Assembly: GCA_002269645.1 (NCBI GenBank)
Contig: NIVC01000181.1
Span: 275,693 to 339,692, forward strand
Source: Macrostomum lignano
Taxonomy: Eukaryota
Length of the DNA: 64,000 nt
Direction: 5' to 3'
Part shown: one piece after another, positions 10,161-51,214 of the stretch
Layout of the letters: every line of letters starts with the position of its first letter
Numbering within the stretch: position 1 is the stretch's first letter
Notes under the pieces: model-generated
Seen by the model: only the letters and a program-made list of their open reading frames with translations
The model's database searches: none
What the model was told of the DNA's origin: nothing
Program-made: the position numbers and the translations under genes

Positions 10161-10837
10161 CGAAGACCTTGAGCAGGCCGGATTGCTATTAGTTTCATAG
10201 GACCTGAGGGCCGGATAGAGAGGCTTCGCGGGCCGCAGTTTGCAAACAACCCCTGGCCTAGTTAGTAGTATGAAAAAATAATACCAATATTTTTTATTTT
10301 TTTATTAGATCCAGCGATCTGTTTTTTTATTTCTAATTTCCACGCAAAACAAATCAATCTACAAAGCGAATCGCAAACAATAGTAAACGAGACAAAAAAT
10401 AATGATAGACTAAATATGATTTTGAGTTGGAACAGATTAGCACAAAGCACAATTGTGAAAAGCGATGACTGATGCGATACGTACAAATAAGCTGTCACGC
10501 GTACACAGGGATATTCGAGTGTCGAGACAAAACAGATAATGCGAGTTTGATTCGAAAGGAAAAACAAAATACATGTAGATTAAGGAAAAAATCCTATAGA
10601 GCCATAATTCTGTTTCGAGTGCAGTTTGAATCGGAAAATGAGAAACAACAAAGAAGAAAATCTTGAAAAAATGCCTATTTTTGTATACCGGTAGAAAGAA
10701 TTCAAATGCAACATCAAATTAGCAGCTAGGAATTTTGCTTGTTAAACAAATATAAGCAATCGCGCTGAGGTTTAGTGCTGACAGTTTCGCAGAAAAATCG
10801 ATAATTATATGGCTTTTGATCAAACTGAGTTTGTTCC

Positions 10838-13800
10838 TTATCGATACGGAAGCGCCGGGGCCGCGGCGGCCTGCTGGTGCAGCCGGCAGTGGCTCAGGTG
10901 CTCCTCAGCGGTGGCCGCGGTGTGCCCGCACTCCTCGCAGACGTGCAGCTTCTCCCTGCGCTCCTTGTGCGCGTAGGCGAGCACCCGGCGGTGCACCTTC
11001 TTGCTGTGCGACTCCAGCGAGCAGCGCTGGGTGAAGGCTTTGCCGCAGTCCGAGCATTTGTAGGGCCGCACGCCTGCGGGTGGGAGGGGCAGCGGCAGGG
11101 CATTAGGTGTGCTATTAGGGTCTCATTAGGTGTGCTTTTAGGGTGGACATTAAGTGTGCTATTAGGGTGACATTAGGTGTGCTATTAGGGAGACATTAGG
11201 TGTGCTATTAGGGTGATATTAGGTGTGCTTTTAGGATGAAATTAGATGTGTTATTAGGCTTAGGGTGATATTAGGTCTCAATGCACAGTTCCTATTTTAA
11301 CCATGTATTGCAACCTGTCAGGTGAACTTTCTAACCAATTAGTTCTGGGCTCTGTCAGCCAGCACATTGCACTCAAATTGTCAAAAGCCTTGCTCAAATA
11401 ATTATCAGTAGAAATTCAGCAACCAGAAACTCAGACAGGTGCGCGAAACAATATGTCAAACTGTCAGGAGAACTCGAAAATCCGCTCGAAAATATTCGAA
11501 GGCTCCGCATGGCCACCCACAGGTGCGAATTTCGATGCCGCTAATTTTCTGCTACAAGAAGCACCAAAAGCAACAGGTGAGTCTGCGCTAAAATCCATCA
11601 GGGCTGGGGCACCCCAGCTAAAGCAACCCGCTAAGCTCACAGCAGCAAAAGCTTCGAAGGTCTGAGCATGGCATGTTGGCAGAAACTCGAAGTCACCATT
11701 TCGAGTTTTGCCTCCGCATTCGCTTTATTTGCTGCAGTTCGGCAGAGCTGACTTCGAGCTATTCGAATCATTGTGAATTTATGAATTCGAATAGTTTTGA
11801 GACCCATTGCTACACAGCAGCCTCCACCCCAGAGCCGATCAATGCCCTACCTTATCGCACCTGTCAATCAGATGAAAACACACACACACCTGGGATCTGT
11901 GCTCCGCATCTTCCCCGCCCTCTCTGATCCCCTAACAAAACTCCCAAATGCGGGTCTGTGCTCAAGGCTGCTGCTCATTGCATCAACTGCCATATTGTTT
12001 TGCCTGTGACTTCGGAACTGATGAGGCTCAGAGTCTGGGACCACCTGACTCGGTCGGTAGCGAGAGAACTGGTGTAGGACGCTGGCCCTGTGATCTAAGC
12101 TGCAGATCGGAAAGAACAATGGAGTCCTATTGTTGGAGGCTGGGCGCCCCATCATGCTAAAATAACAGCCTCACCGCTGGCCGAGGGGGCAGGTGGGCCT
12201 CATTAATTACTCATGACCCGCACTAAGCCGCAATTATTCTTGGAAACTTCGCCCGAAGCCGGCCGAGTTGCGCAACCGCGGGCCGCCGCTCCCCCGGTCA
12301 GGGAAAGTCAAACAGAATCTCTTTGATTTTTACACCTCAGCGCCGGTGACTGGGCAGTCTTTATCCCACTTGAGGAAGATTTTTTCAATTGGAATTTCGG
12401 ATCCAGCGGGGGTCCCCAAACCATTAACGAGCTGGCCTAATCTGGGATTGCGGGATAAAGACCTCTTGAGGAAGTCTTTGTTCGCGGCCCGTTCCGAACG
12501 GAAATCCCCCTCGATACGCCGCGGCCCCCGCTATGTCAGTCCGGGGTTCGAGCCCCGCCGCTGTGGGTGGCGGCCTCGATTGTGAGGCGATGGAGAGCGG
12601 AGGCTGGGAGCAGCAGGTTGGCTCATTAATTATTCAGTAGCGGCAGCACCCCGGGGAGCCGCCTTTTTTGTCGGCCCTTCATCGCCCAGCCTCTTCAGCT
12701 GATTGACTTTCGGCCTCATCGAGTTGATGCAGGGGAAGCTGAGATCCCAGCGGTGGGGATCGGGAGGCCGCGTATCCCGGCGGGACACCTGGGAACCTAA
12801 AAATCCCATGGCCGCCTCTGCTGAATTTTTCATGTTTTCAGCGTGCGCTCCGGTCACGTGACAGGATGGGACTCGAACCCCTGACCGCAAACTTCTATTC
12901 CCACTCTGGCTGCTGAATTTCCAACTTCTTCGACACCCAGCATCCCAAGAGAAAACAATTAGAGGCTTAAGCTTACCTGTGTGAGTCCTCGTGTGCCGCT
13001 TCAGGTCGAAGGTGTCGTTGAAGCCCTTGCCGCAGTACCTGCAGAGGAAGCGCTTCAGGGTCGAGTGGCACTTCAGGTGGCGGTTCAGCAGCCGCTGCAG
13101 GGAGAACTGCTTGCCGCACAGCCGGCACTGGAAGGCGTTCTCTCCGACCTGGGAGCCTGCGGGTAGGAGTGACTTCACTCTGAGTCTGGCTCTGGGAGGG
13201 AGAGTGACTTCACTCCGAGTCTGGCTCTGGGATGGAGAGTGACTTCACTCTGAGTCTGGCTCTGGGATGGAGAGTGACTTCACTCTGAGTCTGGCTCTGG
13301 GATGGAGAGTGACTTCACTCTGAGTCTGGCTCTGGGATGGGAGTGACTTCACTCTGAGTCTGGCTCTGGGATGGGGAGTGACTTCACTCTGAGTCTGGCT
13401 CTGGGATGGAGAGTGACTTCACTCTGAGTCTGGCTCTGGGATGGAGAGTGACTTCACTCTGAGTCTGGCTCTGGGATGGAGAGTGACTTCACTCTGAGTC
13501 TGGCTCTGGGATGCAGAGTGACTTCACTCTGAGTCTGGCTCTGGGATGGGGAGTGACTTCACTCTGAGTCTGGCTCTGGGATGGGGAGTGACTTCACTCT
13601 GAGTCTGGCTCTGGGATGGAGAGTGACTTCACTCTGAGTCTGGCTCTGGGAGGGAGAGTGACTTCACTCTGAGTCTGGCTCTGGGAGGGAGAGTGACTTC
13701 ACTCTGAGTCTGGCTCTGGGAGGGAGAGTGACTTCACTCTGAGTCTGGCTCTGGGAGGGAGAGTGACTTCACTCTAAGTGTGGCTCTGGGATGGGAGTGA

Positions 13801-50100: not shown

Positions 50101-50237
50101 ACGCGCACAAGGAGCGCAGGGAGAAGCTGCACGTCTGCGAGGAGTGCGGGCACACCGCGGCCACCGCTGAGGAGCACCTGAGCCACTGCCGGCTGCACCA
50201 GCAGGCCGCCGCGACCCCGGCGCTTCCGTATCGATGA
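44168..50237 (+). CDS. ovo: Ovo/OVOL zinc-finger transcription factor, paralog B, ~396 aa; join(44168..44195,44544..45100,45729..45918,47734..47913,50002..50237)
   Basis: Same four-ZF domain as paralog A. Exon 1 reads [10 protein letters not shown]|GTAAGT (phase 1), exon 3 carries [14 protein letters not shown], and the stop is TGA at 50235-50237. All junctions are GT-AG and in phase. Confidence 0.9.
46930..47725 (-). repeat. 35-bp minisatellite in ovo-B intron 3 (mirror of 13167-14060), ~23 units with private variants
   Basis: Includes variant units ...GTCG[G/C]TCCAAAT[C/T]TCAAAGCC that are absent from copy A. Confidence 0.9.
49740..49975 (-). repeat. ~22-bp minisatellite before the last acceptor of ovo-B
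   Basis: Mirror of 11102-11280, with more units. Confidence 0.8.
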
Positions 50238-51214
50238 GGAAACCTGACACATGCCCGATTGAAAGCGATTGGTTGATCAATCAATGATGCGATTGGCGAC
50301 TCGACTCTGGCGACGGGGCGACGACGGCAGCGGCGGTGGCAGTGGCGGCGGTGGCAGCACATTCTTCATCTTGGGCTCGTTTTGTTCTGCGTTACGGCTG
50401 TCGGAATTATAAAAGAATCAGTTTTCAAAGCGTGTTACTTTCAGTAGAGTAGTTTGTGCATTCAAAACTAGATTTTTTAAGCTCTCCGCATTTTCTGTGC
50501 CAGCTTTTCTGGGTTTTCTTTTTTCCCTTTCTTTGTGATTTGTTCCACCTGCGGTGCTGCTTTTAGGGAATTTCGTGTGCTCACCAATATTTGCAGCATT
50601 TCTGCCTGTTTTTGTCGGGCTATTTTTTAGGAGTCCAAATATTTTCCTGTCACAAATTTTCTGCTCTTCTTTGTGCTCAGATTTCTACAGATTTCACTAT
50701 TTTCTATTCGATTTAATTTGCACATTTTTTGCCCAACGCACCAAACAAAACAAGGCAAGACCAAGAGACTGCCTCCGACCTCACTCGATCAATACCAGCC
50801 ACGCTGCTCACCTTTTTCGTTCGAAATTTTGCACCAAAATCGTAACTAAAATTTTTCGTCTTGTTGTCAAAGTTCGTCGCCAAAAATTCGTATTTTACTG
50901 TTCGATCGCCATTCTGCTTCAATCGTGCCGCTGCTCGCAATGCGCTAACAAAACATGCAAAAAAAACAAAAAAACTGTCCTAAATGATCTGTTTTGACCA
51001 TAGACAAAGCCTTGATACTGTACTAAAATTGCGTGTATAGTTACATATTTTTTCTATCTTCTGTAGTTGCAAATTATGCTTAGTTAAAAATACAAAAAAT
51101 TGTCTTTGTGACTGAAACGGGCGCTGCGTGTTTTCAGTTATTAAAAACTAAATATGACTCACTTGACTACTGCGTGTTACTTCTTTGACAGCTTATCGAC
51201 ATTCTGTTTTGGTT

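Follow-up and report, generated by a model that had tools for sequence, protein, structure and literature searches.

A mosaic inverted duplication of an ovo-family gene around a divergent CLASP paralogue in Macrostomum lignano

Introduction

How do two copies of a transcription-factor gene come to share an identical DNA-binding domain when their linkers and regulatory sequences have drifted apart? This question is raised by a 64-kb stretch of the genome of the hermaphroditic flatworm Macrostomum lignano (assembly GCA_002269645.1, contig NIVC01000181.1, positions 275,693–339,692; hereafter the window, numbered from its first letter), in which two predicted ovo-family genes, ovo-A and ovo-B, lie in inverted orientation on either side of a CLASP-family gene. 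An earlier, sequence-only reading of the window described a ~39-kb ovo-CLASP-ovo palindrome and considered it unusual on the premise that invertebrates typically have a single ovo gene. That premise fails for M. lignano, whose neopolyploid genome contains, besides the copies in the window, at least two more ovo paralogues, P0001 and P0002.

The M. lignano assembly contains 180 Mb of duplicated non-repetitive blocks at an identity of at least 95%, or 312 Mb of duplicated sequence including repeat-annotated regions, and simple or tandem repeats occupy 15% of the genome (PMC5730564). With hundreds of megabases duplicated in a neopolyploid genome, a local duplication is unsurprising in itself. Paralogous copies from the subgenomes differ by ~2.2% in single-nucleotide polymorphisms (1.1% in coding sequence, CDS); they are ~98% identical over less than 1 kb and ~50% identical at large scale, through long indels, and 5.5% of CDS falls in indels between them (PMC10733133). 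Here, we describe the locus as an inverted duplication with a mosaic structure, in which two copies of an ovo paralogue flank a divergent paralogue of CLASP. The arrangement is of a known kind, the inverted gene pair with concerted evolution.

Results

Two ovo copies lie in inverted arms around a unique spacer

Comparison of the window with itself revealed three pairs of inverted homology blocks: 10834–14969 with 50241–46024, 15964–16821 with 45239–44383, and 20668–22060 with 40248–38862. These blocks, of 4.2, 0.86 and 1.4 kb (the last hereafter block 1, and the 0.86-kb one block 2), are all 97–99% identical, introns included, and identity of 97–100% across kilobases is far above chance expectation. 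The inverted ovo copies around CLASP reported by the sequence-only reading were thereby recovered with the same limits. When the full arms were aligned in gene orientation, their edges were sharp, at 22060 and 38862 on the inner side and at 10834 and 50241 on the outer side, giving arms of 11.2 kb (A) and 11.4 kb (B) with a unique spacer of ~16.8 kb between them. The window contains no Ns.

Beyond these edges the resemblance stops. The spacer (22061–38861) has no inverted or direct homology to the arms or flanks, minisatellite families excepted. Sensitive blastn produced 0 matches between the outer flanks (1–10834 and 50242–64000) and found nothing in common between the sequences adjoining the two inner boundaries. 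On the outer side, homology between A and B ends 4–5 nt past the stop codon, and the 3' untranslated regions (UTRs) are unrelated.

The arms combine two classes of divergence

About 6.4 of the 11.3 kb in each arm (~57%) can be aligned, at 97–99% identity, and the remainder is unalignable or anciently diverged. Therefore, the proposed ~39-kb palindrome holds up as an inverted duplication with arms of ~11.3 kb, but the arms form a mosaic rather than one clean palindrome.

The young class comprises both coding and non-coding sequence. Exon 2 is 98.0% identical between A and B, with a synonymous divergence (dS) of 0.048 and a non-synonymous divergence (dN) of 0.010; exon 4 is 100% identical (180/180 nt) and exon 5 98.7% (233/236 nt), with a pooled dS of 0.010 for these last two. 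Block 1 (98.85% in the segment table), intron 4 (98.5%) and intron 3 without its 35-bp array (97.8%) differ by 1.2–2.2%. Exon 3 belongs to a different class: its identity is 80.5%, with indels, its dS is 0.89 and its dN 0.31, with ~20 synonymous differences in 52 codons. Across a conserved exon 3 motif, A and B agree at 27/36 nt, and either agrees with distant paralogues at 24–29/36. With exon 3 at a dS of 0.89 and exons 2, 4 and 5 at 0.01–0.05, this heterogeneity is evidence that the identity may be younger than the duplication. The anatomy of the locus, its open frames and the two divergence classes are direct observations.

The unalignable parts have a regular layout. Sensitive blastn of 16822–20667 against 40249–44382, ~4 kb each, gave 0 matches, and past the first ~136 nt of intron 2 blastn found no match between A and B, with just exon 3 aligning there. 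The lengths of these stretches are nearly equal: intron 2 contributes 609 nt in A and 628 nt in B, and the distance between block 1 and the proposed start downstream of it is 3,730 nt for ovo-A and 3,919 nt for ovo-B, as the sequence-only reading had noted (3.7 and 3.9 kb). The 4.2-kb block has coding landmarks on both sides, beginning at the 3' end of exon 3 and stopping 4–5 nt past the stop codon. Mismatches between A and B are clustered, with a longest perfect run of 541–584 nt against a simulated 95th percentile of 274; a perfect run of 541 nt exceeded all 5000 simulations, in a test confined to A and B, in which polishing artefacts could also generate such runs.

Recent conversion within an old pair is the favoured origin of the mosaic

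The reading we favour, at a rough probability of 0.55, is that the window holds an old inverted pair of ovo paralogues, parts of which would recently have been homogenised by gene conversion between the arms. It draws on the two divergence ages, on the length-matched decayed segments and on identity tracts that include introns and end with the CDS. Because the unalignable stretches match in length, they fit decayed positional homology rather than random insertions, and the ends of the 4.2-kb block, at the 3' end of exon 3 and at the stop, are where homology between old paralogues would persist. Palindromes offer well-documented examples of conversion between arms (PMC3723533, PMC8327919), and we infer such conversion here as the cause of the mosaic. 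An old duplication would have created the inverted ovo pair flanking CLASP; later, non-reciprocal recombination between the inverted repeats would have copied just some parts from arm to arm, namely block 1, exon 2 and the entire 3' half, which starts where exon 3 ends and includes the stop codon. As the outcome, the two genes would have one and the same four-finger DNA-binding domain and the LKFGISRIL motif in common, with the first exons, the exon 3 linkers, the promoter-proximal and intron 1 sequence and the 3' UTRs kept distinct. Two genes of this form may share DNA targets under different regulation.

Several points weigh against conversion. Blocks 1 and 2 terminate in non-coding DNA beside unalignable sequence, where classical conversion would have no flanking homology. 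All three blocks diverge alike (1–3%), near the subgenome value of 2.2% (PMC10733133), so one duplication of the age of the whole-genome duplication (WGD) followed by segment turnover could look similar. The argument compares A with B alone and takes the structure from the contig sequence as assembled. No same-species protein for the window ovo copies appeared among the listed top hits; because the NCBI annotation of M. lignano is transcript-based (PMC5730564), transcription of ovo-A and ovo-B is unsupported. Exact look-ups of two window open reading frames (ORFs), the ovo finger 1–2 exon and the CLASP TOG2 exon, likewise returned no match.

The best-placed alternative, which we regard as possible though improbable, is a single inverted duplication of about WGD age (~2%), followed by turnover through large indels and minisatellites, with one exon 3 replaced or fast-evolving. 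The aligned blocks are 1.2–3% apart, near the genome-wide 2.2% and the 1.1% of CDS, and the same kind of mosaic, with 98% identity below 1 kb, ~50% at large scale and 5.5% of CDS in indels, is reported for M. lignano (PMC10733133). Tandem repeats make up 28.5% of the window, and ~2.4 kb of the unalignable segment of arm A is minisatellite, consisting of 5-bp and 14-bp tandem arrays identified by Tandem Repeats Finder (TRF). However, indels do not explain a dS of 0.89 in exon 3. Nor did a replacement come from either known paralogue: import of exon 3 from P0001 or P0002 was rejected, as neither is close to A or B. The non-homologous segments are also closely matched in length between the arms, and arm B includes ~2.9 kb of non-repetitive DNA to which nothing in arm A corresponds.

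We consider it unlikely, and less probable than a WGD-age duplication, that the structure is an assembly artefact in which two related ovo loci were misjoined around CLASP, for example via a minisatellite, with cross-mapping during polishing producing the perfect identity. The genome is notorious for the difficulty of its assembly. M. lignano assemblies are error-prone for copy number and contain redundant paralogous blocks (PMC5730564, PMC10733133), the spacer has 1-kb arrays of families that recur elsewhere, arm divergence matches that of homeologues, and the two exact look-ups did not lead to the locus in any second assembly. Set against this, the window has no Ns and homology is restricted to the ovo unit; the outer flanks (10.8 and 13.8 kb) share nothing, and no second CLASP exon lies beside arm B, as a misplaced homeologue would bring. 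A chimeric join through block 1 would still require a copy of block 1 beside the 5' region of CLASP, and exon 3 is too divergent for homeologues.

We give little credence to an extension of the conversion model in which the pair would be a fixed functional 'split isoform' system. Conversion would keep the DNA-binding domain identical, selection would preserve the differences in exon 1, linker, cis-regulatory DNA and 3' UTR, and block 1 would be a common regulatory element that also faces CLASP. A simple haplotig or homeologue is rejected, because the outer flanks and the sequences next to the inner boundaries share nothing and exon 3 has a dS of ~0.9; the sequence-only reading had already argued from diverged exons 1 and 3 against a haplotig, and the exon 1 regions indeed have no detectable homology.

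Both arms encode ovo-family zinc-finger proteins

To judge by their sequences, ovo-A and ovo-B are ovo-family transcription-factor genes with their 5' ends facing inward. The ORFs of both arms carry the ovo zinc-finger signature, four C-terminal C2H2 fingers with ovo-specific sequence and spacing, and both finger exons match Pfam zf-C2H2 and zf-H2C2_2. A protein search with the concatenated exons returned 889 matches, of which the top 120 had E-values of ~1e-53 to 1e-73; these 120 were mostly named ovo, OVOL1/2/3 or lin-48 or were unnamed, with a minority under other automatic zinc-finger names. The two best matches were M. lignano P0001 and P0002, with an overall identity to the window copies of only ~46%. 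The 118-aa zinc-finger domain is the same in A and B; it is 86% identical to that of P0002, 79% to that of P0001, and 68–86% to flatworm, nematode and nemertean ovo proteins.

Two further motifs tie the window copies to flatworm homologues. An N-terminal LKFG(I/V)xxIL motif is found in A, B and five flatworm homologues (P0001, P0002, P0012, P0066 and P0068), and not in C. elegans lin-48 or Tubulanus ovo. Upstream of the fingers, FVNNGxGI(R/K)NPL occurs in A, B and the four flatworm homologues checked. The four C2H2 fingers are thus common to the ovo/Shavenbaby/OVOL/LIN-48 family, and the LKFG and FVNNG motifs are shared with ovo proteins of Macrostomum, Clonorchis, Schistosoma and Cichlidogyrus. 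In Drosophila, ovo isoforms arise from alternative promoters of one gene, whereas here two genes share one DNA-binding domain. Planarian ovo is an eye-lineage regulator, as Lapan and Reddien reportedly showed in 2012. Our literature search on ovo in Macrostomum found nothing relevant.

The sequence-only reading proposed intact five-exon ORFs for both copies. Four coding exons per arm, exons 2 to 5, are open, with canonical GT/AG splice sites conserved between A and B on nucleotide inspection, and the stop occupies the same position in both, as TAA in A and TGA in B. Exon 1 is a prediction. Exon 2 lacks an in-frame ATG in both copies, and the proposed gene limits (10838–16937 and 44168–50237) coincide with the only in-phase ATG...GTRAGT mini-exon predicted in each arm. 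Local alignment of the two mini-exons and their surroundings scored no better than shuffled sequence. We regard the five-exon models, with predicted products of 381 aa (ovo-A) and 396 aa (ovo-B), as plausible. The young blocks have a dN/dS of ~0.2–0.3, which together with the open frames and conserved splice sites is compatible with function, the substitutions being too few to prove constraint.

The putative exon 1 of ovo-A and its donor (16922–16937; GACTCACACAG followed by GTAAG) comprise 16 nt identical to the end of exon 4 and its donor (12977–12990), on the minus strand. This match could be due to chance, aided by the splice consensus, or to a small internal duplication, and it slightly lowers our confidence in the exon 1 call.

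The spacer holds a second, divergent CLASP gene

The only recognisable gene in the spacer is, as first reported, of the CLASP family, and it lies on the minus strand, with exons from 34034/34013 down to 23878 (Table 1). Searches by tblastn with fish, insect and M. lignano CLASPs gave colinear minus-strand matches from 34013 to 23893, which cover residues 55–1115 of the 1136-aa M. lignano P0334, low-complexity linkers excepted. Pfam CLASP_N (PF12348) matches the ORF at 32359–32913 with E = 2.5e-15 and 57 bits, against a curated cut-off of 27, and an exhaustive search found 175 proteins at E<=1e-10, named CLASPs among them. The linker exon contains RRSGIPAPTPS, an SxIP-like, predicted EB1-binding motif. 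The order of its modules, from CLASP_N (TOG2) through a Ser/Arg-rich linker bearing the candidate SxIP-like motif to TOG3 and C-terminal HEAT, is that of the CLASP/Orbit/MAST/CLS-2 microtubule plus-end proteins.

The spacer gene is, on sequence comparison, a second and divergent CLASP paralogue and not the organism's main CLASP. Its identity to the CLASP annotated in M. lignano (P0187/P0334) is only ~47%, and its C-terminal HEAT exons are 51–58% identical to M. lignano CLASP and 93–97% to P0125 by tblastn. P0125, a frameshifted M. lignano prediction in UniProt, matches the spacer piecewise at 93–97% aa identity, with out-of-frame stretches 59/60 identical. The description of the spacer gene as an essential microtubule gene is not established for such a paralogue.

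A hidden Markov model built from 39 CLASP N-termini found TOG1 in none of the frames of the window. This distinguishes the spacer gene from the CLASPs of other animals, but not from those of flatworms: in Macrostomum, Fasciola and Hymenolepis CLASPs, TOG2 lies at residue ~110–135 or follows a TOG1-less N-terminal region of ~220 aa (P0186). Because flatworm CLASPs also lack TOG1, its absence is not evidence that the rearrangement truncated the gene.

All recognisable CLASP modules lie in open frames and in order, which bears out part of the claim that the gene is intact; intactness is plausible though unproven. For the first exon placed at 38436 by the sequence-only reading, no supporting homology or ORF was recognised. 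An 'F..F...P..Q' motif preceding TOG2 is encoded twice on the minus strand, in a mini-exon at 34705–34770 (AGAVDDATFVNSFEEQLPALQ) and in the ATG exon at 33960–34034 (MAVSNLTFESDPAEWLQL), a pattern that points to alternative 5' exons or to duplication of an exon within the gene. Because the mini-exon repeats the motif that precedes TOG2, CLASP may start at 34034 or upstream of 34770.

Table 1. Features of the window, with positions counted from its first letter.
Feature	Position	Strand	Evidence or remark
Arm A: ovo-A and 5.1 kb upstream	10834–22060	-	Inverted homology blocks to 38862–50241
ovo-A exon 5, zinc fingers 3–4, stop TAA	10838–11073	-	Pfam, splice sites
ovo-A exon 4, zinc fingers 1–2	12977–13156	-	Pfam, splice sites
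ovo-A exon 3	15337–15493	-	Splice sites; anciently diverged from B
ovo-A exon 2, with LKFGISRIL motif	16103–16659	-	Acceptor TTCTCAG, donor GTGAGT
ovo-A putative exon 1	16922–16937	-	ATGGAGACTCACACAG, donor GTAAGT, phase 1; sole in-phase ATG...GTRAGT in 5.4 kb upstream of exon 2
Arm A segment unlike arm B, holding putative ovo-A exon 1	16822–20667	-	blastn, 0 matches
Block 1 copy A, non-coding, 1.39 kb	20668–22060	-	98.7–98.9% identical to copy B
Unique 16.8-kb spacer	22061–38861	.	No homology to arms or flanks except minisatellites
CLASP C-terminal HEAT (CLIP-interacting) exons 25006–24875, 24517–24254, 24156–23878 with stop	23878–25006	-	tblastn, HEAT match
CLASP TOG3 exons 26874–26641, 26491–26041	26041–26874	-	tblastn; near-exact P0125 match, shifted frames
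CLASP Ser/Arg-rich linker exon, SGIP (SxIP-like) and SSVCSDCS motifs	30999–31469	-	tblastn, 86% across 22 aa of M. lignano CLASP
CLASP TOG2 exon	32437–32916	-	Pfam CLASP_N; tblastn, 43–48% identity
CLASP exon with in-frame ATG (34034) and TOG2 start	33765–34034	-	tblastn; weak CLASP_N match
CLASP possible alternative or upstream mini-exon, AGAVDDATFVNSFEEQLPALQ	34705–34770	-	Weak tblastn match; frame view
Arm B: ovo-B and 5.3 kb upstream	38862–50241	+	Inverted homology blocks to arm A
Block 1 copy B	38862–40248	+	Same evidence as copy A
Arm B segment unlike arm A, holding putative ovo-B exon 1	40249–44382	+	blastn, 0 matches
ovo-B putative exon 1	44168–44195	+	ATG...AATG, donor GTAAGT, phase 1; sole in-phase candidate in 5.7 kb upstream of exon 2
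ovo-B exon 2	44544–45100	+	Splice sites, open frame
ovo-B exon 3, proline-rich, 33 nt longer than that of ovo-A	45729–45918	+	Splice sites
ovo-B exon 4, zinc fingers 1–2	47734–47913	+	Splice sites, fingers
ovo-B exon 5, zinc fingers 3–4, stop TGA	50002–50237	+	Splice sites, fingers

Relation to other M. lignano loci and to known palindromes

Three other loci of GCA_002269645.1, those of P0002, P0001 and the main CLASP (L001–L003), share with the window the finger exons, at 83–89% nt identity, a portion of the final CLASP coding exon, at 76% nt identity, and minisatellites, and nothing else. Conserved synteny of ovo and CLASP was rejected, as neither such a neighbour nor a second ovo lies within +/-10 kb at any of the three. 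The ovo copies resemble the subgenome blocks of M. lignano (PMC10733133; PMC5730564) in having ~2% substitutions in aligned blocks with long unalignable stretches between. They differ in lying 17 kb apart, inverted, on one contig rather than on homeologous chromosomes, in homology that stops before the flanks and in one anciently diverged exon.

Palindromes of sex chromosomes (human Y P1–P8, primate and mouse X; PMC3723533, PMC8327919, PMC8981503) likewise consist of inverted repeats of >10 kb around a unique spacer, with coding genes in the arms and near-identity tracts, introns included, that are best explained by intrachromosomal conversion. Their arms are >99% identical throughout, whereas the ovo pair does not reach >99% over a whole arm: ~57% of the arm is 97–99% identical, and elsewhere in it no identity is detectable. 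The ovo arms are also small (11 kb) and belong to a hermaphroditic flatworm.

If the structure is real, the locus would be a compact, tractable case, away from sex chromosomes, of concerted evolution between the members of an inverted gene pair, and transgenesis and RNA interference can be used in this animal. In such a case, two genes for a developmental transcription factor would retain one and the same DNA-binding half, with regulatory and linker parts that remain different. Were the split-isoform extension true, two concertedly evolving genes would do what Drosophila ovo/svb does by alternative promoters. With this locus, the ovo family, which has expanded in Macrostomum, gains two members, and a second CLASP, divergent and without TOG1, joins the annotated one. 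No long-standing question is opened.

Block 1, tandem repeats and flanking genes

Block 1 has no Pfam, Rfam or tRNA match, neither terminal inverted repeats nor a target-site duplication was seen at its ends, and no copy was found in 94 kb of other M. lignano loci. On these grounds, its identification as a transposon or RNA gene is unsupported. An ATG-initiated ORF of 89 aa, identical in both copies, lies within it (21726–21995, minus; 38923–39192, plus) and has no Pfam match. Mismatches between the two copies of block 1 fall mostly at its two ends, and its centre is nearly free of them.

The tandem repeats of the window form 27 distinct arrays with TRF scores of at least 200 and periods of 4–112 bp. 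A 28-bp unit occurs at 31681–31833 and 56655–57190 and recurs at 90–95% identity in M. lignano NIVC01001346.1, and a 29-bp unit recurs within the window, at 32960–33640 and 42571–43247. High-GC, low-complexity ORFs are common on both strands and misleading. In both ovo copies, minisatellites abut splice acceptors. The 35-bp array of intron 3 (13167–14087 in A, 46935–47723 in B; 26 and 23 units) reaches to ~10 nt before exon 4, whose acceptor, CCCGCAG/G, sits in an apparently degenerate final unit of the array. In intron 4, a 23-bp array (11101–11258 and 49734–49974; 7 and 10.5 units) stops 27 nt before exon 5.

In the left flank, an ORF on the plus strand (7828–8712) encodes an RRM (Pfam RRM_1, E = 5e-13) preceded by a long Ser-rich region. 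Its best homologues carry the name 'RNA-binding protein with serine-rich domain 1' (RNPS1). A protein search with this RNPS1-like gene returned no Macrostomum match. The ORF and ovo-A lie tail to tail, so that their two 3' UTRs would have to fit into less than ~2 kb. The right flank (50242–64000) contains no recognisable gene; it has a 275-aa ORF on the minus strand (55641–56465) without a Pfam match, and ~2.5 kb of it is a single 12-bp array (58835–61320).

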